The position numbers and the translations under genes are program-made. DNA of 64,000 bases, from the IMG/VR virus record IMGVR_UViG_3300048438_000153, positions 62,001-126,000 of that record. One strand, written 5' to 3'. The notes beneath the pieces are model-generated. The model searched no databases. It was not told where the DNA came from and worked only from the letters and a program-made list of their open reading frames with translations. Positions 20,081 through 38,027 of the stretch are shown here, piece after piece (the first letter of the stretch is position 1; each line of letters opens with the position of its first letter).

Positions 20081-20401
20081 ATGAACGAATGGGTCGTATA
20101 TGTCATTCAGAGTCAGCAACCTCGAAAGACAGCAAGTGGAAAGCCTACTGAGGGATTCTTCTACGTTGGGTGTACTACAGATGTTAGCCGTAGACTGAGA
20201 CAACACAACGGAGAAATAAGAGGTGGGGGTAAATATACATCAAAGCATAGACCTTGGAAGCTCATGTGTACCTATGGCACATACGCTAACAGATCTGAAG
20301 CTATGAAAGCAGAGTTAGCTCTTAAGAAGAAGCGAGGTAAGGCTAGGTTATACTGGACAGAGGAACAGTCTAAATGGTGCAGAGGCAAGAACCTCATTTA
20401 A
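20081..20401 (+). CDS. GIY-YIG nuclease, SLX1-like
   Basis: VVYVI...FYVGCTTDVSRRLRQHNGEIRGGGKYTSKHRPW...AMKAE. Confidence 0.88.
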   Translation: MNEWVVYVIQSQQPRKTASGKPTEGFFYVGCTTDVSRRLRQHNGEIRGGGKYTSKHRPWKLMCTYGTYANRSEAMKAELALKKKRGKARLYWTEEQSKWCRGKNLI

Positions 20402-21233
20402 GCTCTCTCACTTTGCCTTTCTTAAAAGAGGGCTCTATATCCCGTGTTTCGTATCGACCCTCTTCATTCCAACTTAGCTCTGTATAAAAGTATCTACCAT
20501 CAGCCTCAAAAGTAAGCTCTAAACCATCGGGATCTCTGTACAGGTCGAGATCTACCTTCTCAAATTTAGTCTGTATAGGTAAGCCATGTAGAGAAAGATA
20601 GTCTTTTAAAGCGGTTTCCAACTCTTCTGAGGTGACGTAAATATCATCTTCTCTATCTAACTCTCTCTGCATAAGAATGAGCATAGAGAAGAAACCAATA
20701 CCTCCCCCCGCTCTCTTCTCAAGAGACCCTGAATTCTTAGAGAGTAGCGCCTTGAGCTTCTCGTAGATCTCGTTGTTATTCTTACGATAGATCTCTCCTG
20801 AATCTGTGTGGAGAGAAAAGCGAGTGTCGCCATGTTGGAAACTATATATATTCCCAATGCCTCCCATACGTCTCCCACCACCTAAACTTGGGGATCTTCC
20901 CGTAGACCTTGCTCTCTGCATTAAGAACAGCGAAGGGTTCGCGCTTTTGTAATATCCGTCGTAGACCCTCTCTAAGTCTTGTATACACTTCCCTACGAAA
21001 TGGAAATGAACTCCATGAAATCTTACGTCCATCGTTATCTTCTTCTTGTCAGATAAGTCGATAGAAACATCAGAAACACCTCTTGTCGCTTTGACGTGGC
21101 TCTCTAGAAGTTTTTGCTCGCTCTCAAGAGTTACCTCTTCTCGACCCTTAAAAAGACCGAAGATCGCCTGCTTTTCGAGGCTTGCTACTCTCATCTCAAG
21201 GTAGTTGACTATTTCTGAAGCTGTTCTTCTCAT
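20394..21233 (-). CDS. hypothetical protein with MRRTASEI leader
   Basis: Leader MRRTASEIVNYLEMRVASLEKQA. The first domain is similar to that of 36865-37959. Confidence 0.7.
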   Translation of the reverse strand: MRRTASEIVNYLEMRVASLEKQAIFGLFKGREEVTLESEQKLLESHVKATRGVSDVSIDLSDKKKITMDVRFHGVHFHFVGKCIQDLERVYDGYYKSANPSLFLMQRARSTGRSPSLGGGRRMGGIGNIYSFQHGDTRFSLHTDSGEIYRKNNNEIYEKLKALLSKNSGSLEKRAGGGIGFFSMLILMQRELDREDDIYVTSEELETALKDYLSLHGLPIQTKFEKVDLDLYRDPDGLELTFEADGRYFYTELSWNEEGRYETRDIEPSFKKGKVRELK

Positions 21234-21288
21234 GTTCTTTCTCCGTTCAAGGGGCCGTCAATAAAGAAAGATGACTATAAAAGATTAA

Positions 21289-21555
21289 TCACTTAATCTC
21301 ATACATCTCAGGGAGAAACTCATCAAGTATTAACCGATGAGAGAAACCATCCCCTCGAACAATAAGTAAAGAGCTTGATAGGTAGTCCACACTATACTCA
21401 GGGTACATATTCTTGAGCATCCTATAAGCATCGTAAGGATAACCTAGAAAGAACAAAGATTTACCGTCAAGAGAGACTCGATCCTTATCGTGTCTACTCA
21501 TCTGAATAAAGATGTCCATCTTTGAGGGGTTTCTCTTCATAGAAAACCTCCCCAA
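21289..21555 (-). CDS. hypothetical protein
   Basis: ORF packed tightly between co-oriented genes. Confidence 0.5.
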   Translation of the reverse strand: MGRFSMKRNPSKMDIFIQMSRHDKDRVSLDGKSLFFLGYPYDAYRMLKNMYPEYSVDYLSSSLLIVRGDGFSHRLILDEFLPEMYEIK

Positions 21556-21556
21556 C

Positions 21557-21955
21557 CTAGCGATCCTGATCTTTCTCTGAAGAGTCTAACCCACCAAGAG
21601 GGTAACTCATCCAAGAATACCTCTTTCTCGTGTCTAGGTAGTTGATGAACTTGTCACATTCCCAAGCCTCTTGCTCAAACCTGATGGCAAGGTAAGAGTC
21701 GCGGGTGAAACCCTTCTTTCTGACGATCGCGCTCCACAGATAGTCGAACAAGTAAATCAGTAGGAAGCCAACTACGAAAGTCTCAAGATACTGCTGAAAG
21801 TGAATCGTCTCATGCCTCTTGGTTTCCTCACTGAGCGTGCCCCTAGAAAACACGAAACAGAAGAGAGTGATCGCGCTGATTTCAATAGGGGCAAACTTTG
21901 ATAGCCATACGGGAATCTTAGAATTCTCGAAGAAAAACGGTTTTAAGCACTTCAT
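21557..21955 (-). CDS. HExxH zincin-like protein
   Basis: RHETIHFQQ...IRFEQEA. Confidence 0.65.
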   Translation of the reverse strand: MKCLKPFFFENSKIPVWLSKFAPIEISAITLFCFVFSRGTLSEETKRHETIHFQQYLETFVVGFLLIYLFDYLWSAIVRKKGFTRDSYLAIRFEQEAWECDKFINYLDTRKRYSWMSYPLGGLDSSEKDQDR

Positions 21956-22029
21956 AAAGTCACTTTCCTTTCTCTGATAGGTTTTCTATCTATCCCCATA
22001 AGAAAATAACCGACTAAGGGGCAGAGATC

Positions 22030-22518
22030 ATGAGCACACGAAGTAGAGAGTTTAGAGACACACACGCGACGATGGCTAAGCTATGTCAAGTCGCCATCCG
22101 AGAAGTCGTGAAAATTCTGAGTAAGACCCAAGACCCTCTCGTCAGAACCATCGCGATGAGAAAGTTTAAGAACGGCTACAGGCTTCCTAGAGATACCCGA
22201 AGAATCTCTTTAGAGTTTATTACTCTTGGGAGGATATACGCGGAGAAAGAACGGACTTATGGAGGAAGCCGAGTGCCTTTCAGCCGGGATAAGGTTCAAC
22301 TCACTCTTGGTCAGTCAGTGGAGGTCAACACTCTTCTCAGAAACGCGATTCTGTGGGTCTACAGGTTTTGGTCACCGACAGCAATGGCGAAGCTACTCTT
22401 AAGAGGCGGTGGCTTAGAGTTCGTGGATCTCCACATCAGAGAATACGCGCTCCTCAGAAACATCGGATTGATCCACCGCATGAGGTACAGAGAGCTGTTG
22501 AGGCTATTCTTCACCTGA
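22030..22518 (+). CDS. hypothetical basic protein
   Basis: ORF with an RBS and the late-type motif TAGGTTTTCTAT at 21978-21989. Confidence 0.6.
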   Translation: MSTRSREFRDTHATMAKLCQVAIREVVKILSKTQDPLVRTIAMRKFKNGYRLPRDTRRISLEFITLGRIYAEKERTYGGSRVPFSRDKVQLTLGQSVEVNTLLRNAILWVYRFWSPTAMAKLLLRGGGLEFVDLHIREYALLRNIGLIHRMRYRELLRLFFT

Positions 22519-22582
22519 ACACCATCTTTTTTCTGATATATAATGCGCGTAACCACAACCACGCGCAGAGAAAGGACAGACG

Positions 22583-24175
22583 ATGGAAAGTGAAAAGCTA
22601 CTCTCCACCATCGAGAAACTAAGAAAGATCAGGACGAAAGAAGATCTCAAAGCACCCCCCTCAACGATTCTCAAGACTACCCTTGATAACGGCGCTCCAC
22701 TCACTTTGAGGCAGTATCAGATACAGGGGATTCTCCATCTCCTCGCCATGCCCCGATTCGTTCTCGGTGATGATACAGGTCTAGGCAAGACCTTGCAGAC
22801 GATATCAGCTCTTTCTTACTTGTGGGAGAAGAAGCCCGAAATCCCCGCCCTCATCTGCACCACCAAGAGTGCCGTGGGGCAGTGGGAATCAGAGTTTGCT
22901 CGATTCACTAATGGTGTGAAGATATTCAAGTGTCTCGGCACAAAGAAAAAGAGAGCTAAGATTCACGAGGAGTTTCAGAGCTACTCAGACGGACCGAAAG
23001 CTCTTGTGATGGGCTACCGTACCGCTGTCATGGACTTCCAACACCTACAGCACATGAACGGTCATGTGATGATCTTTGATGAGGCTACCGCTTTTAAGAA
23101 TGACTCATCTCAAGTCCATCAGGTATGTAAGCACCTAGCGGGATCTGCGGAGCGCGTTTGGAGTCTTTCTGCGACTATCATCAAGAACAGGCTCATGGAG
23201 GCGTGGGCGATCTATAAGGTCACTGTCCCTCACCTCTTCACGACTAAGACTCACTTTATGAGAGAATACTGCATCACCCGCGATCAGACCCTCCCTGGCG
23301 GTAGGCGACGCATTAAGATCGTCGTAGGCCACAGAAAGAGAGACATCGAGGCTTTTCGAGAGGTCATCGACCCCTATTTCATTGGGCGTCCCAAGCACGA
23401 AGTGGCTCAGGAGCTACCCCCTCTCACGACTAAGACAATCCCATGCCCCCTCTCGAAAGCTCAGAAAGCGAAATATGAGGAGGCGCTACAGGGACTCTTA
23501 GAGGTCATCGACCCCGAAACAGGTGAGGTGATAGAAAGAGAAGTGACGAAGCTCACAGCAGTCACCATCTGTCAGCAAATAGTCAATCACCCCTCTCTCG
23601 TTAACTGTGATGGAGACAGTGGGAAGCTCGACACTCTGATCGACCTCCTAGAGAATGAGTTGGACGGCGAGAAAGTAATCGTGTTCTCGCGCTTCAGGTC
23701 GATGGTTGATATTCTTGAAGCTGAGCTAGAGGGCAGAAAGATCAAGACCTGTCGAATCACAGGGGCGGAGAACGGCGATCAGCGCGTGGCGAGTCAGAAA
23801 GCATTTCAAGACCCTGAGAATGAGACGAGAGTGTGTCTCATCACAATGGCCGCCGCTGAGGGTGTCAACTTACAGCTTGCAAAGGCTGTTGTGTTCTACG
23901 ACACCCCTTGGAGCGCGGGTGACTACCTTCAGATTATTGGTCGCATGATCCGTATCGGGTCTATCCACGATAGGGTCTTTTCCTACCACATCTGCGCCCC
24001 CAAGACGATTGATGATCGCGTGATGAAAACACTAGGGGTCAAGATGAACCTCATCGAGTCTGTGCTCGGAAAGAGACTTAAGTCTGAGACAGATGGAGAG
24101 TCCGTTGTAGAGATGGGACAATCGGAGGTAGCCGACCTCTTTGATGGTCTTTTGGAGGACGCTAGAAGCCTGTAG
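22583..24175 (+). CDS. SNF2-family SF2 helicase/ATPase
   Basis: Motifs LGDDTGLGKT (I), IFDEA (II), SAT (III), EGVNLQ and QIIGRMIRIG (VI). Confidence 0.93.
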   Translation: MESEKLLSTIEKLRKIRTKEDLKAPPSTILKTTLDNGAPLTLRQYQIQGILHLLAMPRFVLGDDTGLGKTLQTISALSYLWEKKPEIPALICTTKSAVGQWESEFARFTNGVKIFKCLGTKKKRAKIHEEFQSYSDGPKALVMGYRTAVMDFQHLQHMNGHVMIFDEATAFKNDSSQVHQVCKHLAGSAERVWSLSATIIKNRLMEAWAIYKVTVPHLFTTKTHFMREYCITRDQTLPGGRRRIKIVVGHRKRDIEAFREVIDPYFIGRPKHEVAQELPPLTTKTIPCPLSKAQKAKYEEALQGLLEVIDPETGEVIEREVTKLTAVTICQQIVNHPSLVNCDGDSGKLDTLIDLLENELDGEKVIVFSRFRSMVDILEAELEGRKIKTCRITGAENGDQRVASQKAFQDPENETRVCLITMAAAEGVNLQLAKAVVFYDTPWSAGDYLQIIGRMIRIGSIHDRVFSYHICAPKTIDDRVMKTLGVKMNLIESVLGKRLKSETDGESVVEMGQSEVADLFDGLLEDARSL

Positions 24176-24247
24176 AAAAACTGCTCTGACCTCCGCTTAT
24201 TCTGATATGGGTAAGACATACTTACCACAGAGATGAAAGGAGAGGTC

Positions 24248-24985
24248 ATGGCGGTCTGCAAGAAGTGTCACGGACACGGTTATGTCCAAGTGGACGAGGG
24301 GCATTATGGGATGCCTCAAGCCGTCCCTTGTTCATGCGTGCTTAAGAGAGCCCTGAGCGTCCAAGCGAGAAAGGCTTGGGGAGGGCTCGAAATCGTACCT
24401 GTTAAGAGAAGCAGTTTACTCAAAGGAAAGATTCGCGAGAACATCGTAGTCACGGCGAACAAGGCTGATCTGATGATCCACCTCAGATCAGCTCTCGCAC
24501 ACCACGCCCGACCTGAAGAGTTCGTAAAAGTAGTTTCTGACGCAACTCTTATTTCTGCTTGGCTCTCAAACCTCGCGCGCTCTGACAAGGATGTGATCGA
24601 CCCCGACTACATCCGTGAGCTGAGAGTGGCGAGCTTAGAAGACTTGGCTGAGTCACCTACTCTCCTCATCATTCGACTTGGCGTTAAGACAGCTAGAAAT
24701 AGCGCGATGCCTGAAGTACTCGCTGAGACGATTGAGCTGAGACAACACTTAGGTAAGCCAACTTGGGTTGTGGAAGAAACAGATAAGCCCTTAGAAGAAG
24801 GTCATATTTCATGGTCTAGGGCTGTGGATGACGCGCTTGATGGTTGGGAGCAAGTACCTCTCATGGGTACAGCTAAAGCAACAAAGCCTATTCAGAGAAA
24901 GGGTGGAGGACTTACTGTTCAGGACGTAAGCTCCAACACCGCTCAAGGACTCCCTCAAGCCCGACATAAGACGATGAAACTATGA
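24248..24985 (+). CDS. DnaC/IstB-like helicase-loader homologue (Zn finger + degenerate ATPase)
   Basis: CKKCHGHG...PCSC Zn finger, LLIIRLG at the Walker-B-like position, IELRQHLGKPTWV. Directly upstream of DnaB. No canonical Walker A seen. Confidence 0.55.
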   Translation: MAVCKKCHGHGYVQVDEGHYGMPQAVPCSCVLKRALSVQARKAWGGLEIVPVKRSSLLKGKIRENIVVTANKADLMIHLRSALAHHARPEEFVKVVSDATLISAWLSNLARSDKDVIDPDYIRELRVASLEDLAESPTLLIIRLGVKTARNSAMPEVLAETIELRQHLGKPTWVVEETDKPLEEGHISWSRAVDDALDGWEQVPLMGTAKATKPIQRKGGGLTVQDVSSNTAQGLPQARHKTMKL

Positions 24986-26493
24986 AGATTCTTAGAAGCA
25001 TATTACCTGACCCCCGCATTGGCGACGACGCTAAAGCGATGCTCCAAAACTACTCTGCGCTCAGGGAGTCTATCTTAAGGTTCGATCTCCCAACTGACGT
25101 GACGATCTATGAGTACATCAAAGACTTCGTTTCTCAGCACTCTCACCTACCTGTGCAGAACACCGCCATTCAGTTTTTCGACTCAAATAATCAATACGAT
25201 GAAGCTGACCGAATCCGTTCCCTCGCCTCTGTCGATCCCGCTTATCGTGGAGACTTCATCTTCTTAATTGAGAAGCAAGTAGAGGACGCGAGGGTTATTT
25301 CCCTGAGTGAGACAATGGCTCAGGTGAAAGAAATCACTCGAAATGGGATCGAGATCAAAGAGGGAAAGAAAAAGCGTATTCTTAAGGGAGCGCGTGACGC
25401 GGGGAAGTACATATTTCAGCAACTACATGGAGTGATGACACCTACGTTCGGATCGCGCATTGGAGGCGAGGCGCTCGGTGATGGAGATGAGTTTTGGGAG
25501 GAGTATCAGAAAGTAAAGGACACTAAAGTAGAAGTCTTACCAAAAACAGGACTTGAAGTAATCGACAACGCTCTCGGAGGCTTTAAGAGGAAAGAACTTT
25601 ACATCATCGCGGGCTTCACAGGACACATGAAGTCTAGGTCAGCACTTAATTGGGTCTACAATCAGAGCGTCTATGGAGGCACGAGCACGATCTATTTCTC
25701 TCTTGAAATGCACTACTCCCAATGTCGTAGGATGATCTATTGCTTTCACAGTATGCACCCTAAGTTCCGCGCTAAGAGAATGGCTCTCGACATCCAAAAG
25801 CACGCTAACCCTGATGTGGGACTCGACCCTATCAAGATGCGTGAAGCGAAGCTCAGTCAAGATGAAGAGGCTTTTCTGAAAGAGGTCGTTCAAGACCTGA
25901 AAGAGAACATGGAGAATGGCACTTACGGCTCGATCTTCTTTGAGGTCGCTGATCCTGACAGCCTCGATTTCACTGTCGAGGACATGAGGACTAAGGCAGA
26001 AGCCATCTCTCAGAAACACCCCATCAAATTGGTCGTAGTAGACCACGCTCTCTTAATGTCGAGTAGGCGGTGGGTCAACTCTACTACAGAGCGACTCAAT
26101 GAGGTGATACGCGACCTCAAGAAAACCGCTATGGGCTTTAATCGTGGTCAGGGTGTCCCTATCCTGTGCCTCTTTCAGATTAACCGCGAGGGCTTCAAAG
26201 CGGCTGAAAAGAACAACGGCACTTACAACCTCACTCACCTTTCCTACGCTAACGAAGCTGAACGCTCTGCTGACGTGGTAATCGCGGGTTGGTTCGGTGA
26301 TGATATGCGTGAGAAGAGCATGATTAAGTATCAGTGTCTGAAGTCTCGCGACCAAGCTCCTTTCGAGGCTTTCGAGGCTCAGGTGTCTTGGCCTGTTGGT
26401 CGTATTCTGAACACACCTCTAAACTTTAATATGGGGTCGTCTTCCAAGTCAGGCGGTAAAGCTAAAGCAGACCCTTTAGATGACGTCGTGTAA
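24982..26493 (+). CDS. dnaB: DnaB-like replicative helicase
   Basis: TGLEVIDNALGGF, IIAGFTGHMKS (Walker A), FSLEM, VVVDH, QINREG, ERSAD, KSR. Confidence 0.9.
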   Translation: MKILRSILPDPRIGDDAKAMLQNYSALRESILRFDLPTDVTIYEYIKDFVSQHSHLPVQNTAIQFFDSNNQYDEADRIRSLASVDPAYRGDFIFLIEKQVEDARVISLSETMAQVKEITRNGIEIKEGKKKRILKGARDAGKYIFQQLHGVMTPTFGSRIGGEALGDGDEFWEEYQKVKDTKVEVLPKTGLEVIDNALGGFKRKELYIIAGFTGHMKSRSALNWVYNQSVYGGTSTIYFSLEMHYSQCRRMIYCFHSMHPKFRAKRMALDIQKHANPDVGLDPIKMREAKLSQDEEAFLKEVVQDLKENMENGTYGSIFFEVADPDSLDFTVEDMRTKAEAISQKHPIKLVVVDHALLMSSRRWVNSTTERLNEVIRDLKKTAMGFNRGQGVPILCLFQINREGFKAAEKNNGTYNLTHLSYANEAERSADVVIAGWFGDDMREKSMIKYQCLKSRDQAPFEAFEAQVSWPVGRILNTPLNFNMGSSSKSGGKAKADPLDDVV

Positions 26494-26503
26494 TGGAAAG
26501 AAA

Positions 26504-26857
26504 ATGGACTCTGATCAGATCTACAAAAAAATCTTAGAATTGCAAAGAAAGAGCAAGTTGGAAAGAAAAGGAGACTGCCTTTACTTTGTGCAGGCGAGAG
26601 GAACAGGTCGCATTAAGATCGGCCGGTCAAAAAACCCTAAAAGACGACTACAGTCTTTACAGACAGGGAACGCGAAAGAGCTCAGACTCATCGCCTCTCT
26701 CGAAGGGTTAGGGTGGCGAGAAAGAAATATCCACGAGAGACTCAGAGAATGGAGAGTTTCAGGGGAGTGGTTCGACTACGATTGTGTAGGAAACATCCCC
26801 GATGAAATCTATGATCTTATCCCCTATGGGGGGCTAGATGATTGGTGGATTGAATGA
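26504..26857 (+). CDS. T5orf172/MUG113-type GIY-YIG domain protein
   Basis: LYFVQ...IKIGRSKNPKRRLQSLQTGN...E..IH...RVSGEWF. Confidence 0.85.
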   Translation: MDSDQIYKKILELQRKSKLERKGDCLYFVQARGTGRIKIGRSKNPKRRLQSLQTGNAKELRLIASLEGLGWRERNIHERLREWRVSGEWFDYDCVGNIPDEIYDLIPYGGLDDWWIE

Positions 26858-27012
26858 ACCCTGAAGAGTGTATGCTCGTCGCTTCTTTCTTAACAATCAT
26901 CGCGACACAACCCAAACGCCCCACTGAGTATGACCCACTCAAGAAAGTGGGTGTGTTCTGTCTTTATGCGCTTATTTTGTTCTACCTCAATCAAATACTA
27001 TATGGAGTGTAA
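26854..27012 (+). CDS. small membrane protein (52 aa, below the track cutoff)
   Basis: MNPEECMLVASFLTIIATQPKRPTEYDPLKKVGVFCLYALILFYLNQILYGV*, with ATGA overlap with the upstream stop. Confidence 0.5.
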   Translation: MNPEECMLVASFLTIIATQPKRPTEYDPLKKVGVFCLYALILFYLNQILYGV

Positions 27013-27042
27013 GTCTTACTTTAACACACACTCAAAAAAGAG

Positions 27043-27393
27043 GTGAACATGACATTTGAAGAGCTGAGAAAGACCACAAGGACTCCCATTGACTGTATCT
27101 GTGGCGGTAATGGAGTTATACTCTCGACAAAGAAGCCTTGTGCAGAACACTTCCTCTACTCAACAGACGAGGAGTTCAGACTTGAATCTCTTCGTCTTGT
27201 ATACGCTAACTTCCGCGCCTACGTCGTGGCTCAGGCTAAGGCACTTAAGGATACCGCCCCACACCTCCCTAAGAACTCAAAGCAAGTCGATGAGGTGGTC
27301 AAGGCGATCTTCAACCCAACCACGCCTGAAGAGTGGGTCACAGCGATCCGTAACTACATCCTCTCTGCCCTCTTCTATTTCATCTGCGATTAA
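27043..27393 (+). CDS. hypothetical protein (CxC...CxxH)
   Basis: ORF within the replication operon. Confidence 0.6.
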   Translation: MNMTFEELRKTTRTPIDCICGGNGVILSTKKPCAEHFLYSTDEEFRLESLRLVYANFRAYVVAQAKALKDTAPHLPKNSKQVDEVVKAIFNPTTPEEWVTAIRNYILSALFYFICD

Positions 27394-27405
27394 GGATAGA
27401 GAACA

Positions 27406-29336: not shown

Positions 29337-29385
29337 GTTTTCTTTCTACATCCTTATCTATGTCAACAGCTATGGGAGAAAGAAC

Positions 29386-29736
29386 ATGAAAAGAACAGCA
29401 TCCGAAATTCTCAGTGACCTCGACAGGCGACTCGCACGTTTAGAAAGGACAGCATCAAGAGGTATAAGTGACGGCACTACAGAAGAGCTTCTTGACCGCA
29501 TCAACGACGAATACACCGAGTGGGTTGGGTGGCAATACCCGACGACTCTTAACCAAAGAAAAGACGGCGTTACCCTCGTTTCAGTCGAGGACTACTACGC
29601 AGTAATATGGGTCGGCTTCGGTGAGGGCGAAGACGAGATCATTGACATCACAAAGAATATGAGCAGAGCGAAGAGAATCTATCAGTCATTGAAGTTTGAC
29701 CCTATTCGCTACCCCCACTATCGCTTTAACACCTGA
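29386..29736 (+). CDS. hypothetical protein with MKRTASEI leader
   Basis: RBS ggagaaagaacATG; leader MKRTASEILSDLDRRLARLERTAS. Confidence 0.7.
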   Translation: MKRTASEILSDLDRRLARLERTASRGISDGTTEELLDRINDEYTEWVGWQYPTTLNQRKDGVTLVSVEDYYAVIWVGFGEGEDEIIDITKNMSRAKRIYQSLKFDPIRYPHYRFNT

Positions 29737-29740
29737 ATCA

Positions 29741-30757
29741 TTAGCTCTGAGCATCAATCGCGTGACTAAGAATCGTCCCGTGATATAAGATATCTTTCAG
29801 GGTTTCCACGTCACTGACCTGTTTCGAGGTCACTCTGATGTGTGCCTCTTGATATGACCTCCCTGACACACTAGGGAAATCATATCGAAAGAACAGGATG
29901 TTCCCATCTTCCCCGATGAGAGTGAACCGTTCTTCAGACGCCTTCATAAACAGTGGCGAGTATTTTCTGATGAAAGTATTGATCTCCCGATCAAGAGCCC
30001 TCTCGTCTTTCACGGAAACGACCTTCTCAGAATACTGTCTTTTAGAAGGTGGCTTGAGAGGGTTCTTGTCTAAGAAAGACATCTCTAAGGTGTAAAAATC
30101 AGAGCTAGAGATCAAGTACATATTCGCGACTCTAATCGCGCTCGCTCTCTTCGTAGAGCCTATATGCTCTATCACAGACCTGTTGTTGTCGATAAGAACA
30201 ACATCCCCACTCTCTACAGCTTCATAGAGAGCTCCATCGACACGAGGATGGATAGACAAAATATCCTCTCCTAACATCGGAACACCGTCTAAAGAAAACA
30301 GAGTTCTCATAAGAACACTCGCGCTATCTACAATGGCTTCGGCGATATCTTCCACATAAGGCTTCAGACTGTATTGAAGATCAACGGTCGTAAAGCTGTA
30401 ACCTCTTGGATTGAGCGCGTCTACTTTGTTATGTGGCTGTCCCATAACTTTCTTAAAGATCGTCTTGAACTCCCCTACCTCCATCACAGTAAGAACAGGT
30501 TTGATACCCCCCTTTTTCATCTTTACCGCGCCCATTGTCTCGTCAAGAGAAAGGATCATATGCCACACTCCTCTTTCGCATTTAATGACCCAAGTGTCGT
30601 CTACAACAACCTGACCATTTTTGCGGTAGGGGATCTTTTTCTTAGCACTCCATGTACTTTTAGGGACGTGAGTCACAGACCAATCAAGAGAGGGGGTCTT
30701 TCTATTCAAAACGCCCACTACAGGATCAGCCCATTTCTCGTCTGCATACTCCATCAC
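29741..30757 (-). CDS. two-domain hypothetical protein with an internal KRAS-RVANMYL junction
   Basis: The C-terminal domain is paralogous to 30754-31188. Confidence 0.65.
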   Translation of the reverse strand: MMEYADEKWADPVVGVLNRKTPSLDWSVTHVPKSTWSAKKKIPYRKNGQVVVDDTWVIKCERGVWHMILSLDETMGAVKMKKGGIKPVLTVMEVGEFKTIFKKVMGQPHNKVDALNPRGYSFTTVDLQYSLKPYVEDIAEAIVDSASVLMRTLFSLDGVPMLGEDILSIHPRVDGALYEAVESGDVVLIDNNRSVIEHIGSTKRASAIRVANMYLISSSDFYTLEMSFLDKNPLKPPSKRQYSEKVVSVKDERALDREINTFIRKYSPLFMKASEERFTLIGEDGNILFFRYDFPSVSGRSYQEAHIRVTSKQVSDVETLKDILYHGTILSHAIDAQS

Positions 30758-31188
30758 CGAACTTCTCTCAAGGCATGACTAAAAACAGTGCCATATTGCA
30801 AAATCTGAAGAAGATCCTCGTCGCTAAAGTCCTCTGAATCTATACCTATCAAAACGTACCTACCCTCACCGTTAAACTCACTGAGAGTGTACTTAAAGTT
30901 GGCTTGGTAAGAATCTCTAGTACGAAAAACTTCAAGGTAGGAGATGCGCTTTTCGTCAACCTCATTGAGATCCCACTCCACATCTTTCACATATTCTCTT
31001 AATGCCTTCTCGAATTCATCTTCGTTTCTTATATCAGTAATGGATGATCCGAGTGACCTTGGTTTATTTGCCCAAGGCTTATTTCGATAGTCTGTCCTAT
31101 CTTCATAGGTGAGTTGCATCTTAAAAGGGGCTCGTCCAGCAACCTTCATCCTTACGATGCGTTCTATCATTTCTTCCCTAGCCATCAC
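30754..31188 (-). CDS. hypothetical protein, paralogue of the C-terminal domain of 29741-30757
   Basis: LLQILQYGTVFSHAL versus LKDILYHGTILSHAI. Confidence 0.65.
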   Translation of the reverse strand: MMAREEMIERIVRMKVAGRAPFKMQLTYEDRTDYRNKPWANKPRSLGSSITDIRNEDEFEKALREYVKDVEWDLNEVDEKRISYLEVFRTRDSYQANFKYTLSEFNGEGRYVLIGIDSEDFSDEDLLQILQYGTVFSHALREVR

Positions 31189-31235
31189 ATCTCCTGTCTG
31201 TGTTAATATAGTAAGATACAGGGGATATAGACGAC

Positions 31236-31811
31236 TTATTTAATCTTCTTCTTAGACCGCCACTCTTCCCTCATCTTGGCTTCGATGAGGGGTAGATTCT
31301 GCTCGGCGCGGTGGAGGTCGTGAGCTTTCTTTCTCGCGTTTTGATCAAGTTTCATGTTCCCTAGCACTGTAATCTCACCCGTAGTCTTATCTTGAAGCCT
31401 AGAGGTGAGTCCTGTGGTTTGGGGCATGAGTTGCTTGATCAGGTTAGGGTCGATATTCTTGATGGCGATATCCCACACAAGGTCGATCTCAAGACCCTGC
31501 ATCACCATGAGAGGGTTGCCTCCATACTCGGTGTTCATCTTCTGACGAAAAAGACTGATTCCTGAGCGGGTCTTAAGCTCAAGGTCAAAGAAGTGAACAG
31601 CCATAGGAAAGTTGGGGCGGTCAAAGAACATCTTGAAAGCCACATGGAGATTCTTATCTCCGAAAGAAACGACAGGGTTGTCTACATGACCCCAATCATG
31701 AATCAGAACGTGGATCTCTTTACTCTCAACGAGTCTCGAAATGAACTCCTGTTCTATTTCTGACATAGGCACATAGAGCGCCTTACCTTTACCTCCGAAG
31801 ATGTTGCTCAT
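31236..31811 (-). CDS. hypothetical protein
   Basis: Clean ORF with a GAGGAGAG RBS. Confidence 0.65.
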   Translation of the reverse strand: MSNIFGGKGKALYVPMSEIEQEFISRLVESKEIHVLIHDWGHVDNPVVSFGDKNLHVAFKMFFDRPNFPMAVHFFDLELKTRSGISLFRQKMNTEYGGNPLMVMQGLEIDLVWDIAIKNIDPNLIKQLMPQTTGLTSRLQDKTTGEITVLGNMKLDQNARKKAHDLHRAEQNLPLIEAKMREEWRSKKKIK

Positions 31812-31834
31812 ACTCTCCTCCTCTTCTCTGTAGT

Positions 31835-33346
31835 TTAGTTAATACTACCAAGAGAAGAGTCCATCATATCCATCAGTTCGAGCAAGTTTTCACCTGATGT
31901 TCTTTCTCCGAGAGAGTCATCTAGTTGACTCATAAGAGAAAGAAGATTCTCACCCGCTGTGCGCCCTAGTGGGTAGCTCGGAGTCCCTATTGTGTTAGCG
32001 ACCTCAATGAACTTATCCACGTCGAAGCTGATCGTGTCGAAGCCTTGCAAGATCGCTTTCTCGATGTTTCTTTCTACATACCCCTGTGAGATGAAGTTTA
32101 AGACAATCATCGGACTCACATAGTAGTCAATCGTGTTTTGGCGTTCCATATGACTCAGACCTTGAGAAGCCCTCTCAAGAGCGTCATTAAAGAACTCTGA
32201 GACCTCATCAGCTACGAGTTTCTTAAGATCCGCTGTGCCTCTCTGCACGAGCGCCTTAATCGCTGTGTGGAGATCCTCTTGCTCCTCCTCAAAGTGATCA
32301 TAAAACTTGCGAGTGGCTTTCAGCATACGGAAGTCTCTTGGCTCAAGACCACAACTACCGACCTTCGATTTGACATATCTTCTTAAATAGTTGTAGTCGT
32401 ATTGAAAGCCACTTAAGCCTCTAAAGATGGGGAGCTGTGACTCAGGATCTCCACTACCTAAACCTACCTCTTCTGAGGCTTTCTCTATGTAGGGTGTAAG
32501 AGCCTCTATGATTTCTGTGTTAGAGAGCTCCGCTATGTTATCGACACCACTCTTACCGACGAACTTGATTTGAACAAAGTCCTCTCGAAACTCAGTGATG
32601 TGGGAGGGGCGAAGAGAAGAAGCGCCAAACGTAGAGATCTCTTCAACTACATTACCCCCACTGTCTTTTCTGACTGTCTTTCCGATTTTCTGAGATCCCG
32701 GCCTAATACCCGTCTCCATCATAATCGCAGTCAAGATCGCGCTAAGTCTGAGGTCTTCATGAGGGCTCTTCATATCAGTTAAGACTTCATCAACAAGATC
32801 GTTATAGTTGGATATCATATTAGCGAGGAGATCATGCTTATGGAGAAGATCTCTACCTTGGTTACCTACCCTATCACGCACCTGAGAAATATTACCCGCA
32901 TCGTCGAGTTTAAAAACGATGTTTCTCGGGAGATACTTTCGGATTGCCTGTGGGATTCTTTCTCTTACAGACGCCTGCTCGACGAAGAGGAGCTTATACT
33001 CGAACCCTTGATCTGCGTATCTCTTAACCCTTCCCTCCTCAATAGGAGTGACAGGCTCACCCTCAAAGAGAAGAGTCACTAGGAGGTTGAGCGCGCCGTT
33101 TCTGACGCGGTTAGATCCCTCAGCTTCTTCGAGAGTACCCATGTAAGTGTCTAGGTACTTCTCGACTTCAGAGAAAGCAGAAATGTACTTCTTGAATCTA
33201 GGCTTCTTATCGAAAGAAGCCACGTTTACTTTCTTATTGATTTTAGCGTGGAGCTTAATGAACTCCCTAACAGCCTTACGAGCGTGCTTGATCTGATTCT
33301 TTGCGTCTCGGACGTTGAGCGCGTCAGCTTGTATTTGAAATCCCAT
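31835..33346 (-). CDS. DNA topoisomerase IB (poxvirus/bacterial type)
   Basis: Catalytic pentad context: TGIRPG (R), FVGKSG (K), PRDFRMLKAT (R), LSH (H), TIDYYV (Y). Also STFGASSL. Confidence 0.88.
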   Translation of the reverse strand: MGFQIQADALNVRDAKNQIKHARKAVREFIKLHAKINKKVNVASFDKKPRFKKYISAFSEVEKYLDTYMGTLEEAEGSNRVRNGALNLLVTLLFEGEPVTPIEEGRVKRYADQGFEYKLLFVEQASVRERIPQAIRKYLPRNIVFKLDDAGNISQVRDRVGNQGRDLLHKHDLLANMISNYNDLVDEVLTDMKSPHEDLRLSAILTAIMMETGIRPGSQKIGKTVRKDSGGNVVEEISTFGASSLRPSHITEFREDFVQIKFVGKSGVDNIAELSNTEIIEALTPYIEKASEEVGLGSGDPESQLPIFRGLSGFQYDYNYLRRYVKSKVGSCGLEPRDFRMLKATRKFYDHFEEEQEDLHTAIKALVQRGTADLKKLVADEVSEFFNDALERASQGLSHMERQNTIDYYVSPMIVLNFISQGYVERNIEKAILQGFDTISFDVDKFIEVANTIGTPSYPLGRTAGENLLSLMSQLDDSLGERTSGENLLELMDMMDSSLGSIN

Positions 33347-33362
33347 TTCTTTCTCCTATCTT

Positions 33363-33689
33363 TTAAAGAGTGCCGTCGAACTTCTCGTCATCAGTAATTG
33401 CACCTAGAGGCTCTGATGGAGAAATGGGTTTCTTAGGGGGAGGTGTGGGCGCTTCCTTGTCGATAGCAGAGACAGCGATGTGTGTGTACTTGTCGAGTGC
33501 AGCCTGACCCAAAATGTAGCCTATCTGAATGAACCCACTAGTCACGATCATAGAAACGAGCACCATGAAAGCATAGTGCTCGATCTTAGTCTGATACTCC
33601 CAAATCACATAGAACATGAGAATCTTCCACCCGAGATCGGCGATGAGGTAGGCGAGGAACTTCTTACTCTTTAAAGGCAACTTGTCCAT
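33363..33689 (-). CDS. small two-TM membrane protein, holin-like candidate
   Basis: KSKKFLAYLIA start followed by two hydrophobic helices and a charged/Pro-rich tail. Confidence 0.45.
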   Translation of the reverse strand: MDKLPLKSKKFLAYLIADLGWKILMFYVIWEYQTKIEHYAFMVLVSMIVTSGFIQIGYILGQAALDKYTHIAVSAIDKEAPTPPPKKPISPSEPLGAITDDEKFDGTL

Positions 33690-33749
33690 GATAGTGGTTC
33701 TCTTTCTTATCGAGGTATTCTAGCTCTCTTTGAGGATAAAGAAAGTATC

Positions 33750-34124
33750 TCAGCGCGCGAGGGGCTTGATGTTGACTGTCAAACCACTCTTCGCCCCCGA
33801 TGGCTTCGCTTTCCCCCTAAGCTGACCTAGCATGGGGTCATTTATTCTGAGGTTGTTCATTCCTGTCTGAAAGTCATCCTCCTCCTGTTGCTGATACTTG
33901 TTCGTTTTCAGCACAGAGGGGTGTTCCTCAATCAGCGTCTCAAGCCTGTACTGCTCTTCAGGGAGGAGCGTTGGGAGGAGCTGAAAGAAATCCTTTCTCG
34001 CTGACGGGTATATCTTAAGGAACTCCAAGATGACCTCATCATCAAGTACAGGTGGGTTCTGTGGGTTCGTGTTGCTTCCCTTGAGGGACACTCCACCCTG
34101 AGCGTTGATCCAAAAGTTGCCCAT
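33750..34124 (-). CDS. hypothetical protein
   Basis: ORF with an AAGGAG RBS. Confidence 0.6.
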   Translation of the reverse strand: MGNFWINAQGGVSLKGSNTNPQNPPVLDDEVILEFLKIYPSARKDFFQLLPTLLPEEQYRLETLIEEHPSVLKTNKYQQQEEDDFQTGMNNLRINDPMLGQLRGKAKPSGAKSGLTVNIKPLAR

Positions 34125-34127
34125 GAT

Positions 34128-34186
34128 CTCTCCTTATTCTGATATGTATCTCCACCTATCACCCTCCCATAAAAGAATAAGGAGAG
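34128..34186. promoter_or_regulatory. 13-bp inverted repeat formed by the RBSs of two divergent genes
   Basis: ctctccttattct (34128-34140) and agaataaggagag (34174-34186). Confidence 0.65.
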
Positions 34187-34189
34187 CGA

Positions 34190-36868
34190 ATGTTTGACGA
34201 CTTTCTCGCAGACATAAGACGACCTGTCATAGAGTCCTACGAATGGATGAAAGAATGTGACCTAATCTTAGGCACGAAAGAGAACATAACTCAAGCCATT
34301 GACGAGTGCATGGCGGTTGAAGTCTACGGTTGCGACATCGAGACTACAGGACTTGACAACCGCGTCTTTGAAGGGCGCACGATGGACTCTATCGTGGGTA
34401 TCGGGATCGCGCCATCTCACGACAAGGCTTATTACTTTCCTATCGGACACAAGTCAGGCTCAGAGTATAACATTCCTTGGTCAATCATCGGACGAGAGTT
34501 TGGGCGTCTGTTCGACCCTTCCACGAAAGCCCGACCTGTCTTCCACAACATCTCTTTCGACGCGCCTTTCTTAGAGTACAACGGCTTCTTCTCGCTCGGG
34601 AAAGATCGGTGGGATGACCACAAGAAATGGGAAGACTCTCTCATCATCAAGTACCTCCTCAACCCACGTCAAAAAGGAGGGCGTGGGCTTAAGGCTCTGT
34701 CAGACAAGCTCTGTGACATGAAGATGATTGAGCTCAATGAGCTATTCCCCCCTGAAGAGGAACAGCGAGACTACTCGACCATTGACCCTTCATGGCAACC
34801 TTGTGTACTCTACGCGGCGGCTGATCCTCTCTGTACTCTCAGAATATGGGATATCATGAGAAAGGAATACGAAGATGCGCCTGAGCACTCTGACTCGATG
34901 TATAACCTCGAAAAGATGTGCTGTATCGCCACCTCATGGATGCACCGATGCCGAGTGTATATTGACCCTGAGAAAGCGATGGAGTCAGCGATTGAAGGTC
35001 AGCGCCTATGGTGGGAGAGTCTACTAGAGGTATATAAGGGCGCGTCTAAGATTCTAGAGAGAGACATCACACCCTCTTTCGTCAAGATCATGCGCGATGG
35101 ATCAAGAGGTCTGATCGAGCCCTTCGACCCCCGAGCCATCTCTGAGGGAGGGAGCGCCAACTACAAAGTGATCGTACAGGAAGCTCGAAGATACGCGCAA
35201 AACACCGCACCTGATCCAACTCAAAAGATCAGTAAGAGTGTGGCTCTGCTCGGTAAGTCTGCTGGTACTGAGAAAGTGGAGTTTCCCTATACGTATGACG
35301 TTCTCTCTCCTCAACAGCTAGGTTTGCTCTTGAGAGAGTTGGGAGTAGATGGTCTGCTCGCCTCTGAGAAGTCAGGCCAAGTAGTCACTAAGGGAGAAGT
35401 TCTCGATGAGGTCATCGAGAAAAACTCTGAGAAACTCCCTTTCATGAAGAAAGTGAAGAACCTCCGTGTTCTCGTCAAGGCGCTCAGCCAATACCTCATC
35501 CCTTTCATAGAGGACATTGGATCTGACGGTACGCTGAAGCCGAAGTTCGATCAGTTCAGTGCTGACACAGGGCGTTTTTCGTGTAAGACTAACAGTAAGC
35601 CCCATATCGTGAGAGACGGCGGTTGTCGCGTACCTTTTCAGGGCATCCCCGCCTATGGAAAAGACAAAGACAAGAAGCCCGCGATCATTTCTTACATGAG
35701 AGATTGTATAGTCGCGCGCGAAGAAGGGTGGTGGCTGACCGCGATTGACTACGCAGGTGTAGAGCTAAGACTCGTAACTAACCTCTCGAAAGAGCCCCTG
35801 TGGATTAAAGCTTTCTTCGAGTGTTCAGACTGTGGGCAACAGTACCCTAGAGAGATGGGGGAAGATGAGATTCCCACACCGACTCCAACCTATTGTGTGT
35901 GTGGGTCGGATCGCATAGGTGATCTGCACACTGTAACTGCGGTTGCTTTCTACGGCGAGGGCGCTAAGGGAAAACCTGATTGGAAAGACAAGCGAGGGAA
36001 CGGAAAGGGATGTAACTTCGCCCTTTCTTACGGAGGCACAGGGAAAGCTGTTCAGCGCACTATCAAGTGCTCTGCTAAGGAAGGGGACGAAAAGTATAAG
36101 ACTTTCACGAGCACTTACAAGACACTCGCCTCTTGGTGGGGGAAACAGAACAAGTTCGCCCATAAACATGGCTATGTTAAGACGGCTTTCGGACGAGTTC
36201 AGCCCCTCCCTGATATCCACGACGAGGATTACAGAAAGTCCTCGAAAGAGGAGAGAAAGGCGGTGAATGGACCTGTTCAGGGAACGAGCGCGGATATCAC
36301 GAAGCTCGCGATGAGTCTCATCTACAGAGAGGTTAAGAAACGAGGGTGGTTCGATAAGCTCAAGATGATCCTTACAGTCCACGACGAGATTGTCTTTGAG
36401 ATCCATGAAGACGTGATCGGAGAGGCTATCCCTGTACTGACTCAGATTATGGCGAGAAACAAAGCAATCGCCAATCAGGGATGGGAAGTCCCTCTCCTTG
36501 TAGACGTAGAGATCGGAAAGACGTGGGGAGTGCCATACGACCTCAAAGACTTAAGGCGAGGGTACAAGGAAAAGCTCGTACCTGACGGCGTTGATGAAAA
36601 GGGGGAGAAGAAGTACAGAGAGGAGCGCGTTCCTGTGCCTGAATCACTCGCTAAGATTTTCTATGTGGGGAGTGAGGCTGATGAGCCTTCTTCAAGCTCG
36701 CCTGAGAAAGAAGAAGGCTCAGGTTCTTCATCCGAAAGCCCCTCTAAGACTTATGTGCTTAAAGAGCTTTCTCAGGACTCCGCGTTCGATTTGGGTATGT
36801 GGCTCTCCCATAATACGGACGGTGTTGTAACGTATGAGGGGAGAGACATCACGGCGCTGTTTTCTTAG
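34190..36868 (+). CDS. polA: DNA polymerase family A with 3'-5' exonuclease
   Basis: ExoI CDIETTGL, ExoII FHNISFD, ExoIII YAAAD; DTGRFSC; motif A IDYAGVELR, motif B RGNGKGCNFALSYG, NGPVQGTSADI, motif C VHDEIV. Confidence 0.95.
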   Translation: MFDDFLADIRRPVIESYEWMKECDLILGTKENITQAIDECMAVEVYGCDIETTGLDNRVFEGRTMDSIVGIGIAPSHDKAYYFPIGHKSGSEYNIPWSIIGREFGRLFDPSTKARPVFHNISFDAPFLEYNGFFSLGKDRWDDHKKWEDSLIIKYLLNPRQKGGRGLKALSDKLCDMKMIELNELFPPEEEQRDYSTIDPSWQPCVLYAAADPLCTLRIWDIMRKEYEDAPEHSDSMYNLEKMCCIATSWMHRCRVYIDPEKAMESAIEGQRLWWESLLEVYKGASKILERDITPSFVKIMRDGSRGLIEPFDPRAISEGGSANYKVIVQEARRYAQNTAPDPTQKISKSVALLGKSAGTEKVEFPYTYDVLSPQQLGLLLRELGVDGLLASEKSGQVVTKGEVLDEVIEKNSEKLPFMKKVKNLRVLVKALSQYLIPFIEDIGSDGTLKPKFDQFSADTGRFSCKTNSKPHIVRDGGCRVPFQGIPAYGKDKDKKPAIISYMRDCIVAREEGWWLTAIDYAGVELRLVTNLSKEPLWIKAFFECSDCGQQYPREMGEDEIPTPTPTYCVCGSDRIGDLHTVTAVAFYGEGAKGKPDWKDKRGNGKGCNFALSYGGTGKAVQRTIKCSAKEGDEKYKTFTSTYKTLASWWGKQNKFAHKHGYVKTAFGRVQPLPDIHDEDYRKSSKEERKAVNGPVQGTSADITKLAMSLIYREVKKRGWFDKLKMILTVHDEIVFEIHEDVIGEAIPVLTQIMARNKAIANQGWEVPLLVDVEIGKTWGVPYDLKDLRRGYKEKLVPDGVDEKGEKKYREERVPVPESLAKIFYVGSEADEPSSSSPEKEEGSGSSSESPSKTYVLKELSQDSAFDLGMWLSHNTDGVVTYEGRDITALFS

Positions 36869-37959
36869 ATGCTCCAACCTATAGGGACGTATTTATCTTC
36901 AAGCCTCACGCCGTTGTAGGAGTACTGTTTCTTCTGAGGACCTATATACCTATCTCTTGTAAACTCTCTGTCAGAGTCTTCTATATACTCCTTAAGTTTA
37001 CGTCTCTCATGATCAGTCATCTTTCTTTTCTTCGGCTTATTGTCAACGTAGATGAGCTTCTTTTTGAGGACTTGCCTTAAGAAAGAGTAAGCGAGGTCAC
37101 TGTGGAGTGTGTTCCTTGCCTTCCTACCGTATGTCTCCTCTATAATGTCCGTCACCTCGTCAGCGTCAACAGCGAGGTGGGCGCTATCCGCCCAATCGTA
37201 AAGGTCTGAAGCGCCTTTTAAGAATGTCTTAATTTCAGACGAGTCAGAAAGACTAGCGAGCTTGAAATACACTTCGACCCCTCTGTACTGAAAGCAAATC
37301 GTATGGCTCTTTTCTTTTAAGAAAGAAAAGCCATGCCTCTTGAGGAGTTCATTTGATCTAAGGGTGTCTTGATACTCGGGCTTACTTTGATACATAGACT
37401 CAGAGTTCCATCTCTGATAGTATTCAGGAAACTCAGGGTACGCGCTCATCTTGTCGAGCCGAGCGATTCTCCCTCTAGAGCTATTCCTTTCTCCCCCTTC
37501 TAAATCGAGTAACTCCGTGAGCCCAATAACAGTAGAAAGAACAGAATAAAGCCCCTTTGTGGTGGAGATCACGACTGATTTCTCAAGTCCTCTTCTGTCA
37601 ATCTCATACCTAGTGATGGGGATCTGCCCCGACCTCAAGCCTGTGGGTCTAATTTTCGAGTCATAAACTCCGAATCTCTCTGTTTCGTCGTGAGTAACCT
37701 TTCCGTTAAAAACGAAAATCTCCCCCCGAAAGATAAGATTGATTCTGAGACCCCCTTTTTTTGAGATAGAGACATCGACTCGATCAACGTCGTCAAGGTT
37801 CGCTTTTATCGCGCCCTCAATCGACTCTTCTTCTTCTCTAGTGTAGCTTTTAAAGAGGTTAAGAAACCCTGACTCTGTTTCTGAAGCAAAGTGATCACCC
37901 TCAAGTCGGGCGACCCTGATCTCTAGGTCGGAAAGGATTTCTGAAGCTGTTCTTCTCAT
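36865..37959 (-). CDS. hypothetical protein with MRRTASEI leader
   Basis: Leader MRRTASEILSDLEIRVARLE, plus an internal RIARLDK. Confidence 0.7.
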   Translation of the reverse strand: MRRTASEILSDLEIRVARLEGDHFASETESGFLNLFKSYTREEEESIEGAIKANLDDVDRVDVSISKKGGLRINLIFRGEIFVFNGKVTHDETERFGVYDSKIRPTGLRSGQIPITRYEIDRRGLEKSVVISTTKGLYSVLSTVIGLTELLDLEGGERNSSRGRIARLDKMSAYPEFPEYYQRWNSESMYQSKPEYQDTLRSNELLKRHGFSFLKEKSHTICFQYRGVEVYFKLASLSDSSEIKTFLKGASDLYDWADSAHLAVDADEVTDIIEETYGRKARNTLHSDLAYSFLRQVLKKKLIYVDNKPKKRKMTDHERRKLKEYIEDSDREFTRDRYIGPQKKQYSYNGVRLEDKYVPIGWSI

Positions 37960-38027
37960 GGTCTGAGCTCCCTTTCTTTGATATGGTTAAGCACACATTA
38001 AAGCCAAGATAAAGAGGATACAGAAAC

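Follow-up and report, generated by a model that had tools for sequence, protein, structure and literature searches.

The window analysed in this work, a 64,000-nucleotide stretch of DNA (bases 62001-126000 of the 275,102-bp IMG/VR virus record IMGVR_UViG_3300048438_000153, CheckV completeness 88%), belongs to the genome of a huge phage in which genes with unrelated products begin with one and the same short N-terminal leader. Our analysis reveals that this leader is first of all a protein feature, borne by small, soluble and mostly unrelated accessory proteins; we directly observed a family with a strict N-terminal position of the leader, a codon pattern at its start, internal recurrence of half-motifs, enrichment of the motif [RK]xAS in head proteins and variable synteny of the leader genes. 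As to its function, the chances seem to us about even that it is a head-targeting propeptide similar to the capsid targeting sequence (CTS) of phage T4, whose trimming at [RK]-x-A|S would fall to the prohead protease. Unless referred to the genome (i.e. the whole record), positions are those of the window; all translations were made with translation table 11.

The leader comprises 20-24 residues with the consensus M-R-R-T-A-S-E-[IV]-[IL]-x-x-L-E-x-R-[VI]-A-R-L-E-[RK]-Q-[AS]-S. A local leader profile identified 11 clear leader genes in the 275-kb genome, all 11 matching at Met1 (genome starts 25198, 25553, 83233, 99959, 133097, 136309, 141638, 142304 and 215940 on the minus strand, 27259 and 91386 on the plus strand), as well as weak ones at genome 31946 (plus) and 111451 (minus; window 49451), and the cargo parts of the 11 proteins are mutually unrelated by BLASTP. 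A search with a degenerate DNA pattern placed the leader on 55 stretches from IMG/VR contigs as long as 375 kb, with ~17 matches apiece in two near-complete relatives, and the leader profile retrieved 1,071 protein clusters (50% identity) at E<=0.001 from 1.84 billion cluster representatives. The leader lies at residue 1 in 139 of the 150 best public clusters, the median length being 139 aa, and the logo of these best 150 clusters shows conservation ending sharply at residue ~24. The 62 leader proteins collected fall into 48 cargo clusters without detectable mutual similarity, some cargo groups being true orthologues. The constant leader with variable cargo that an earlier note on this DNA had proposed from a few genes thus extends far beyond the scale envisaged there. 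Cargo sizes range from 60 to 340 aa, and a membrane-like segment was predicted in only 2 of 136 leader proteins, the cargo being soluble. Pfam and PHROGs scans left the cargo almost without annotation, Pfam domains being assigned to only 2 of 51 leader cargos (pentapeptide repeats and WGR), and an ESM Atlas look-up for P0002, the product of the window gene starting at 37959, gave no usable match. The logo depicts the leader as a charged amphipathic helix devoid of any hydrophobic stretch; this feature, together with the size of the cargo, led us to reject both a Sec/Tat signal peptide and the leader of a ribosomally synthesized and post-translationally modified peptide (RiPP). Megablast of the region against GenBank phages gave no match, tblastn of the leader against GenBank cultured phages returned chance-level hits (E=5) and no cultured carrier, and a literature search with the leader peptide strings found no earlier description. 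Near-identical DNA was recovered from seawater or marine metagenome runs of 17 studies; the carriers of this family are uncultivated marine huge phages with a phage-G-type head.

Three clear members lie in the window. P0001 (279 aa; 20394..21233, minus strand; leader profile E=4.6e-14 at Met1) and P0002 (364 aa; 36865..37959, minus strand) have in common their first ~100 residues (38% identity, E=6e-9), i.e. the leader and a first domain, and differ in the remainder, as the earlier note had stated; their leader-coding segments (codons 1-20) are MRRTASEIVNYLEMRVASLE (21174..21233, minus strand) and MRRTASEILSDLEIRVARLE (37900..37959, minus strand), respectively. P0003 (116 aa; 29386..29736, plus strand) also matches the leader profile at Met1, its leader MKRTASEILSDLDRRLARLE (29386-29445, plus strand) being followed by RTAS. 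A gene at 48642..49451 (minus strand, 269 aa), with the N-terminus MYRLSSENLTALEDRIEYLEKRA, agrees with the consensus at 13 of 23 residues and matches the profile weakly (E=2.1), and is probably a diverged member. The earlier note had added a leader start at 51880; the string atgagaagaacagcg is indeed present there, at Met25 of a longer Peptidase_C39_2-like open reading frame (ORF; 51113..51952, minus strand), which has only MRRTA in common with the leader, is not matched by the leader profile and was left outside the member count. Judging from its sequence, the N-terminus of this ORF (MRRMSS...IRGLEERLRKV) may be a degenerate leader. The same ORF has a Lys-rich C-terminal tail, and its N-terminus, MRRMSSLGRSSIRGLEERLRKVLP followed by MRRTAK, resembles a degenerate or duplicated leader.

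The first leader half, MRRTASE...LE, is confined to protein starts and never occurs internally in the best 150 proteins. In these same proteins the second half, R[VIT]ARLE[KR][QS][AS]S, gives 16 matches beyond residue 35 versus 0.025 expected, about a dozen of which are true copies, mostly placed at domain junctions. Both two-domain genes of the window carry one internal half-leader: GSLEKRAGGG at residues 169-178 of P0001 (20700..20729, minus strand), at the junction of domains 1 and 2 and comparable to the leader end ASLEKQA, and GRIARLDKMSA at residues 163-173 of P0002 (37441..37473, minus strand), where homology to P0007 begins. Domain shuffling among these proteins is real: P0007 pairs the leader and another first domain with the second domain of P0002 (67% identity), P0008 joins the first domain of P0001 to another C-terminal part, and L062 equals L028 with an inserted extra domain, whilst P0014, from a relative, carries the cargo of the 29386 gene behind a leader duplicated in tandem. 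Therefore, of the proposal that recombination at the leaders shuffles cargo domains, the shuffling is borne out and the site is not, as the junctions of the shuffled domains sit at internal half-leaders instead of at the N-terminal leader.

Outside the window, the head genes include those for the 292-aa major capsid protein (genome 182994-183872; phage G gp27, PDB 6wkk, E=7e-63), an acidic, repeat-rich scaffold-like protein (genome 184640-186685), a head-maturation protease-like protein (genome 186675-188093; phrog_18299, E=1.6e-15), the portal (genome 191567-193240) and the large terminase (genome 193473-196607). Further matches of the protease-like protein are phage G gp19 (E=8e-13) and, in phage Tunturi_5, the 'head maturation protease' (E=3e-33). 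The scaffold-like protein is highly acidic, contains Met/Ala/Glu/Asp repeats (MAED runs) and varies in length from 413 to 765 aa among relatives, with a conserved ..AMERKA[SA]KC.. in its N-domain and a conserved C-terminal tail, ..ELSKLWESAPDVSKFF. When counts of [RK]xAS were compared with the mean of 2,000 composition-preserving shuffles of each protein, the motif was found 9 times in the scaffold-like protein (0.67 expected), 5 times in the protease (0.39), and 10, 5 and 4 times in the neighbouring proteins encoded at genome 197986-200586 (0.97), 205439-206293 (0.30) and 208078-208620 (0.15), none of the 2,000 shuffles reaching the observed count in these five proteins; the capsid protein and the portal contain none (0.14 and 0.23 expected). 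All 27 scaffold homologues contain 3-10 copies each and share an invariant A659-S660 about 22 residues from the C-terminus, and the protease shows a conserved RVA-SG at residue 25 and an invariant A289 in KSA-S directly after the catalytic domain. The leader itself reads R-T-A-S at residues 3-6 and often R-Q/T-A-S at residues 21-24. In Tunturi_5 the motif recurs 18 aa from the C-terminal end of the scaffold-like protein and at the protease's end, and an annotated 'DNA ejection protein' contains it five times. This cultured Tunturiibacter phage (PP885688, 309 kb) has, at 268733-287443, the same order of protease, scaffold-like, small and capsid proteins as found here.

The leader is not the same in all phage lineages. 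The DGHHR cargo (genome 215107-215940) has at least 276 homologues, of which the close ones bear this leader and the distant ones other N-terminal peptides that, from their sequences, are possibly alternative leader types. The recurrent N-termini of these distant homologues (P0163-P0282) are LTASDRxxLIRLASxLPxGSxERR and LRxxLIRLAHxNPxLRxxLLPLL; the DGHHR cargo has no Pfam match and is possibly ParB-like. Phage G001 (IMGVR_UViG_3300046779_001841, 316 kb), a more distant relative whose protease is 50% identical, uses a shorter leader, MISQKLASLEARIAKLE, on at least six genes. Its leader genes (L158:504-4889, L159:537-956) are almost the same over ~25 nt of the 5' untranslated region (5'UTR) and over their first 30 coding nt, which makes the G001 leader look much more like a DNA cassette or a recent duplication than that of the window's genome. 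Given the different leaders on the DGHHR cargo and the use of MISQKLASLEARIAKLE in G001, the leader varies with the head lineage, in keeping with a tag co-evolving with the machinery of the head. A 516-aa protein of the present phage (genome 174527-176077) begins with two tandem copies of LIR[LT]AYxNxExRxxxLP[LF] with RTASE between them, and the promoter-like motif yTTTAT[A/C] described below lies upstream of its gene.

At the DNA level, two claims of the earlier note were reproduced to the letter: the genes at 21233 and 37959 open with the same 23 nt, and those at 21233 and 29386 have a ribosome-binding site (RBS) in common despite lying on opposite strands. The string ATGAGAAGAACAGCTTCAGAAAT is exact at 21211-21233 and 37937-37959 (both minus strand), gave no match in any of 100 shuffles and recurs with 3 mismatches at 29386-29408 (plus strand). 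The RBS string GGAGAAAGAACATG is exact at 21231-21244 (minus strand) and 29375-29388 (plus strand) against 0.07 expected occurrences, the Shine-Dalgarno sequence and A-rich spacer, GGAGAAAGAAC, being the same at 21234..21244 (minus strand) and 29375..29385 (plus strand). The leaders also constitute the longest repeats within 20000-38500 (direct, 64 nt with 77% identity; inverted, 72 nt with 75%). The assertion that DNA identity exceeds what the protein demands holds for nt 1-23 of the 21233 and 37959 genes (23 of 23 matching), as a bias in codon choice, and fails beyond them, with only 22 of 37 positions matching over nt 24-60. Codon choice was surveyed in 54 leaders, mostly obtained with a pattern that allows any Arg codon, although 11 loci came from an exact-23-mer scan, which somewhat inflates TCA, GCT, ACA and GAA. 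At Arg2 and Arg3, 106 of the 107 Arg codons are AGA, as compared with 38% of Arg codons genome-wide, whereas AGA, AGG and CGN are freely used at Arg15 and Arg18 of the same leaders. Thr4 is ACA in 42 of 54, Ala5 is GCA or GCT in 48 of 54 with all four codons represented, Ser6 is TCA (28) or AGT (20), and Glu7 is GAA in 51 of 54 despite a genome preference for GAG (67%). In distant phages codons 2-7 likewise follow the A-ending series AGA AGA ACA GCW TCA GAA. Synonymous sites of codons 9-20 are randomised to saturation, and the choice at codons 4-6, not at 8-20, is mildly homogenised within the genome (0.66 vs 0.49, p=0.002). Beyond a GGAG RBS and the A-rich spacer the 5'UTRs of leader genes are unrelated, except for the tandem pair at genome 141638/142304, which has in common its 5'UTR and ~85 nt of coding sequence.

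The A-ending codons 2-7 across distant phages point to selection near the start codon, as expected of a translation-initiation region, and the switch of Ser6 between the codon families TCA and AGT argues that the leader residues themselves are selected. Invariant residues plus a consistent A-ending choice at codons 2-7 thus account for the 23-nt identity, and the occurrence of the exact 23-mer in distant phages, in front of leaders that differ downstream, argues that it is kept by selection. Therefore, selection accounts better than recombination for the identical 23 bases, which do not point to a recent exchange, and nothing in this genome singles out the leader DNA as the recombining unit; more generally, start-proximal codon selection can mimic a DNA repeat. 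The only tRNAs of the phage, tRNA-Arg(CCT) and tRNA-Arg(TCT) (genome 25925-25997 and 26376-26448), lie outside the window between the leader genes at genome 25553 (minus strand) and 27259 (plus strand). As codons 2-3 are invariably AGA AGA, translation of the leader may be coupled to a phage tRNA.

The leader genes do behave as mobile units. The 37959 gene sits between the gene for PolA (34190-36868) and the gene at 38028-38606, on the strand opposite to them. No leader gene follows PolA in any of 12 relatives (PolA 54-61% identical), most of which have a homologue of the 38028-38606 gene directly after PolA, two having other genes between; since the slot lacks it in all 12, the 37959 gene is an opposite-strand insertion in this phage. 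Relatives either have nothing in the slot of the 21233 gene or have other genes there, and their leader genes occupy other positions around the SNF2 helicase core. Contigs from four DNA runs of other samples revealed neither joints removing or replacing the 37959 gene nor recombinant joints, the single loose end at a leader being the paralogue at genome 141638 aligned to the 50-nt leader. Of the 106 sites of the motif yTTTAT[A/C], 40 fall in non-coding DNA, which makes up 6.7% of the genome. Among 13 leader-type genes examined, 10 have the motif 40-60 nt upstream; in the window, cores are found 48 nt 5' of the ATG of the 21233 gene (TTTATA, 21276..21281, minus strand), 54 nt 5' of that of the 37959 gene (TTTATC, 38008..38013, minus strand) and 5' of the 48642-49451 gene (TTTATC, 49496-49501, minus strand). 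The motif also precedes the operon for the 1133-aa protein, the protease and the scaffold-like protein, as well as the gene at genome 183889-184497, itself just 5' of the major capsid gene. The evidence for a promoter consists of this intergenic concentration of the core motif and its position upstream of genes; a bipartite promoter, TA[AG]T-N-TTTAT, was rejected, its 26 sites not being clearly above the 12-19 of random sequence. Taken together, the mobile unit is the whole gene, i.e. promoter-like motif, strong RBS, leader and cargo, inserted in variable slots between core genes. The mobile DNA cassette of the earlier note therefore survives as far as the variable slots are concerned, and not for the leader itself, in view of the mere 23 nt, the unrelated 5'UTRs and the saturated synonymous sites. 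In a relative (L025:2470-4589, ENA contig k141_603990) three leader genes stand beside a Volactin-family protein (PF25216) and a gene, encoded on the other strand, for a GIY-YIG endonuclease; a homing endonuclease adjoining the leader genes in L025 could contribute to their mobility.

It is the evidence from head proteins, motif and lineages, taken together with the T4 precedent, that leads us to favour a head-targeting propeptide. According to this reading, the N-terminal half, restricted as it is to protein starts, would direct the protein to the core of the assembling prohead, and the amphipathic C-terminal half, ending in [RK]-x-[AS]|[SAG], would be where the prohead protease cuts. Processing would release the cargo within the capsid, from which it would exit together with the DNA, and multi-domain members would be polyproteins cleaved at the C-terminal half-leaders in their interior; the steps of packaging, cleavage and ejection are inferred. 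It is tempting to speculate further that the leader is a general address tag by which abundant marine huge phages of one clade would load more than 1,000 mostly unknown effectors, some of them as polyproteins to be cleaved at half-leaders, into their capsids and inject them with the DNA, a wider claim that we regard as possible and yet somewhat doubtful. Such a tag would be the counterpart of the effector signals of bacterial secretion, and its lineage variants would co-evolve with scaffold and protease, an extension that we advance with the same reserve.

Several observations weigh against the head-targeting propeptide. Enrichment of [RK]xAS extends beyond head proteins (143 proteome-wide in one count and 130 in another, vs 55 expected), the motif also fits that of basophilic kinases (R-x-x-S), about half of the leaders lack A-S directly after the helix, and several leader genes lie among replication genes. 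Profile-profile comparison of the leader with the scaffold found no match, for which reason a leader mimicking the scaffold, suggested by resemblances to its RTAS...ELSKLW tail and AMERKAS N-domain, was dropped. The AlphaFold model of the protease (pLDDT 45.6) is too poor for use, so that its family is assigned from the sequence matches. Complex prediction for a 36-aa leader with its alignment against capsid protein, protease and residues 55-165 of the scaffold scored 0.00, which is evidence neither way, and no RNA run containing this phage was found among the sequencing runs searched. Finally, the leader's C-terminal half looks like a generic coiled-coil heptad, and oligomerisation could be its sole role.

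This last point can be extended to a rather unlikely alternative, in which the whole leader is a coiled-coil docking or oligomerisation helix unrelated to the capsid, tethering domains to one another or to a cytoplasmic hub, with the internal copies as zipper linkers. The hydrophobic positions 9, 12, 16 and 19 of the logo do follow an a/d heptad pattern, RVARLE is found in designed coiled-coil peptides, and the complex prediction just mentioned gave no support for a capsid partner. A coiled coil nevertheless leaves unexplained why MRRTAS is invariant and strictly N-terminal, why the second half alone recurs internally, why the scaffold-like protein and the protease are so rich in [RK]xAS, and why phage lineages differ in the leader that one conserved cargo, DGHHR, carries. 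Equally, an ordinary paralogous family, with an N-terminal helix kept by descent as part of each fold and without any role in targeting or processing, would agree with the ~100 residues common to P0001 and P0002, which reach beyond the leader, and with the true orthologues in some cargo groups. We consider it very unlikely, since conservation stops sharply at residue ~24, the 62 proteins and 1,071 public clusters spread the leader over unrelated cargo, it is joined to recognisable foreign domains (pentapeptide repeats, WGR), and it is swapped for others on the DGHHR cargo.

Two further explanations place the function in the nucleic acid. Were the leader DNA (RBS plus first codons) a recombination cassette, with homologous exchange shuffling the cargo, the exact 23-nt identity, the modest homogenisation of codons 4-6, the tandem pair at genome 141638/142304, the near-identical starts of at least six G001 genes and the domain swaps between relatives would all follow, and T4-type phages do shuffle genes at conserved regulatory cassettes (PMC2839356, PMC4122927). 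Little credence can be given to it here: the identity is restricted to 23 nt, with saturated synonymous sites after them and unrelated 5'UTRs before; the same 23-mer precedes different downstream leaders in distant phages; AGA AGA is fixed while the codons of Arg15 and Arg18 vary freely; and the contigs of other samples are devoid of recombinant joints. Alternatively, the constraint could act primarily on the mRNA, AUG AGA AGA ACA GC being a translational control element and the peptide secondary. The near-exclusive AGA at positions 2-3, the preference for GAA at codon 7 against that of the genome, and the location of the only phage tRNAs, Arg(CCU) and Arg(UCU), between leader genes speak for it. 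Expression could then be coordinated through a need for the phage's own tRNA-Arg(UCU) in efficient translation, or through a bound regulator, variants that appear as improbable as the reading itself. The Ser6 switch and the four Ala5 codons argue that residues are selected, residues 8-24 are conserved with free synonymous variation, and the half-leader recurs inside proteins, far from start codons; an mRNA effect would thus probably add to the protein function rather than replace it.

Among the remaining features of the genome, the window encodes an SNF2 helicase, DnaB, a type IB-like topoisomerase and PolA. The 503-aa ORF at 31835-33346 (minus strand) weakly matches the catalytic core of eukaryotic-type DNA topoisomerase I (PF01028, E=2e-6), an unusual find in a phage. 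ORFs of very large size (4204, 2884, 1737, 1804 and 1832 aa) without family lie at genome 41034-53648, 9780-18434 and 221308-238031, and the last three carry the promoter-like motif. Membership of the phage in the freshwater bS21 huge phage clade was rejected, as it lacks an S21 gene and differs in GC content.

Should the leader be a tag for packaging and processing, a single short motif would identify the injected repertoire of widespread uncultivated marine huge phages, flag more than 1,000 families of uncharacterised proteins as candidate host-takeover or anti-defence effectors, provide a candidate cleavage specificity for the phage-G-type prohead protease, and furnish a portable tag with which foreign proteins could be loaded into very large capsids. 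Tunturi_5 is a tractable cultured system for the proposed cleavage motif. Even if packaging proves wrong, the leader is a clear case of a conserved N-terminal module on hundreds of unrelated cargoes.

With regard to known systems, the PeSS/PeSL cassettes of T4-type phages (Arbiol 2010, PMC2839356; Comeau 2014, PMC4122927) likewise involve small accessory genes in hyperplastic regions, present or absent between relatives, with short conserved regulatory sequences at gene starts where recombination has been proposed. In our phage, by contrast, the conserved DNA amounts to 23 coding nt and a promoter-like core of ~6-8 nt, the 5'UTRs differ, no promoter plus stem-loop module of the PeSS/PeSL type is common to the leader genes of this genome, and conservation is explained at the level of protein and translation. 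Encapsulin cargo-loading peptides resemble the leader as short tags that load diverse cargo into an HK97-fold shell; they are usually C-terminal and uncleaved, with a different motif, and serve a bacterial compartment rather than a virion. In herpesviruses, the protease assemblin, whose fold is common to phage prohead proteases, cuts the scaffold and protease precursors at release and maturation sites of the form x-A|S. The candidate Ala-Ser sites described here are comparably placed, ~22 residues short of the C-terminus of the scaffold and immediately behind the protease domain, although they derive from motif statistics and conservation only. The phages phiKZ and SPN3US belong to a different head lineage, and their cleavage motif ends in Glu. 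They package numerous head, inner-body and ejection proteins, which the prohead protease trims and which are injected along with the DNA (PMC5694885, PMC7411985, PMC10052503; review PMC13282480); in the passages checked, a single leader on a large and diverse cargo set did not turn up.

The closest parallel is provided by T4, in which targeting lies with the N-terminal part of the CTS and processing with its C-terminal part (PMC9026906); phage prohead proteases are moreover homologous to herpesvirus assemblin (PMC9026906). The T4 internal proteins known as IPI, IPII and IPIII (PMC9026906) have in common a short N-terminal propeptide on otherwise unrelated small proteins and, like the leader proteins, show a bipartite logic, come from non-conserved accessory genes thought to act in host takeover or anti-restriction, and are accompanied by an encoded prohead protease. 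The leader differs from the CTS in lacking sequence similarity, in having double the length and in its helical, coiled-coil-like character. Cleavage by the T4 protease follows Glu, whereas the site proposed here is [RK]-x-A|S, and the T4-type site [LI]-x-E does not fit the leader, where E20 is invariant and the spacing unsuitable. There are 11-17 leader genes per genome and more than 1,000 cargo clusters in our case, as against a handful in T4, and multi-domain proteins here contain internal copies, with packaging and cleavage proposed from sequence. We regard the leader as a new and very large variant of the known theme of a shared N-terminal targeting propeptide.

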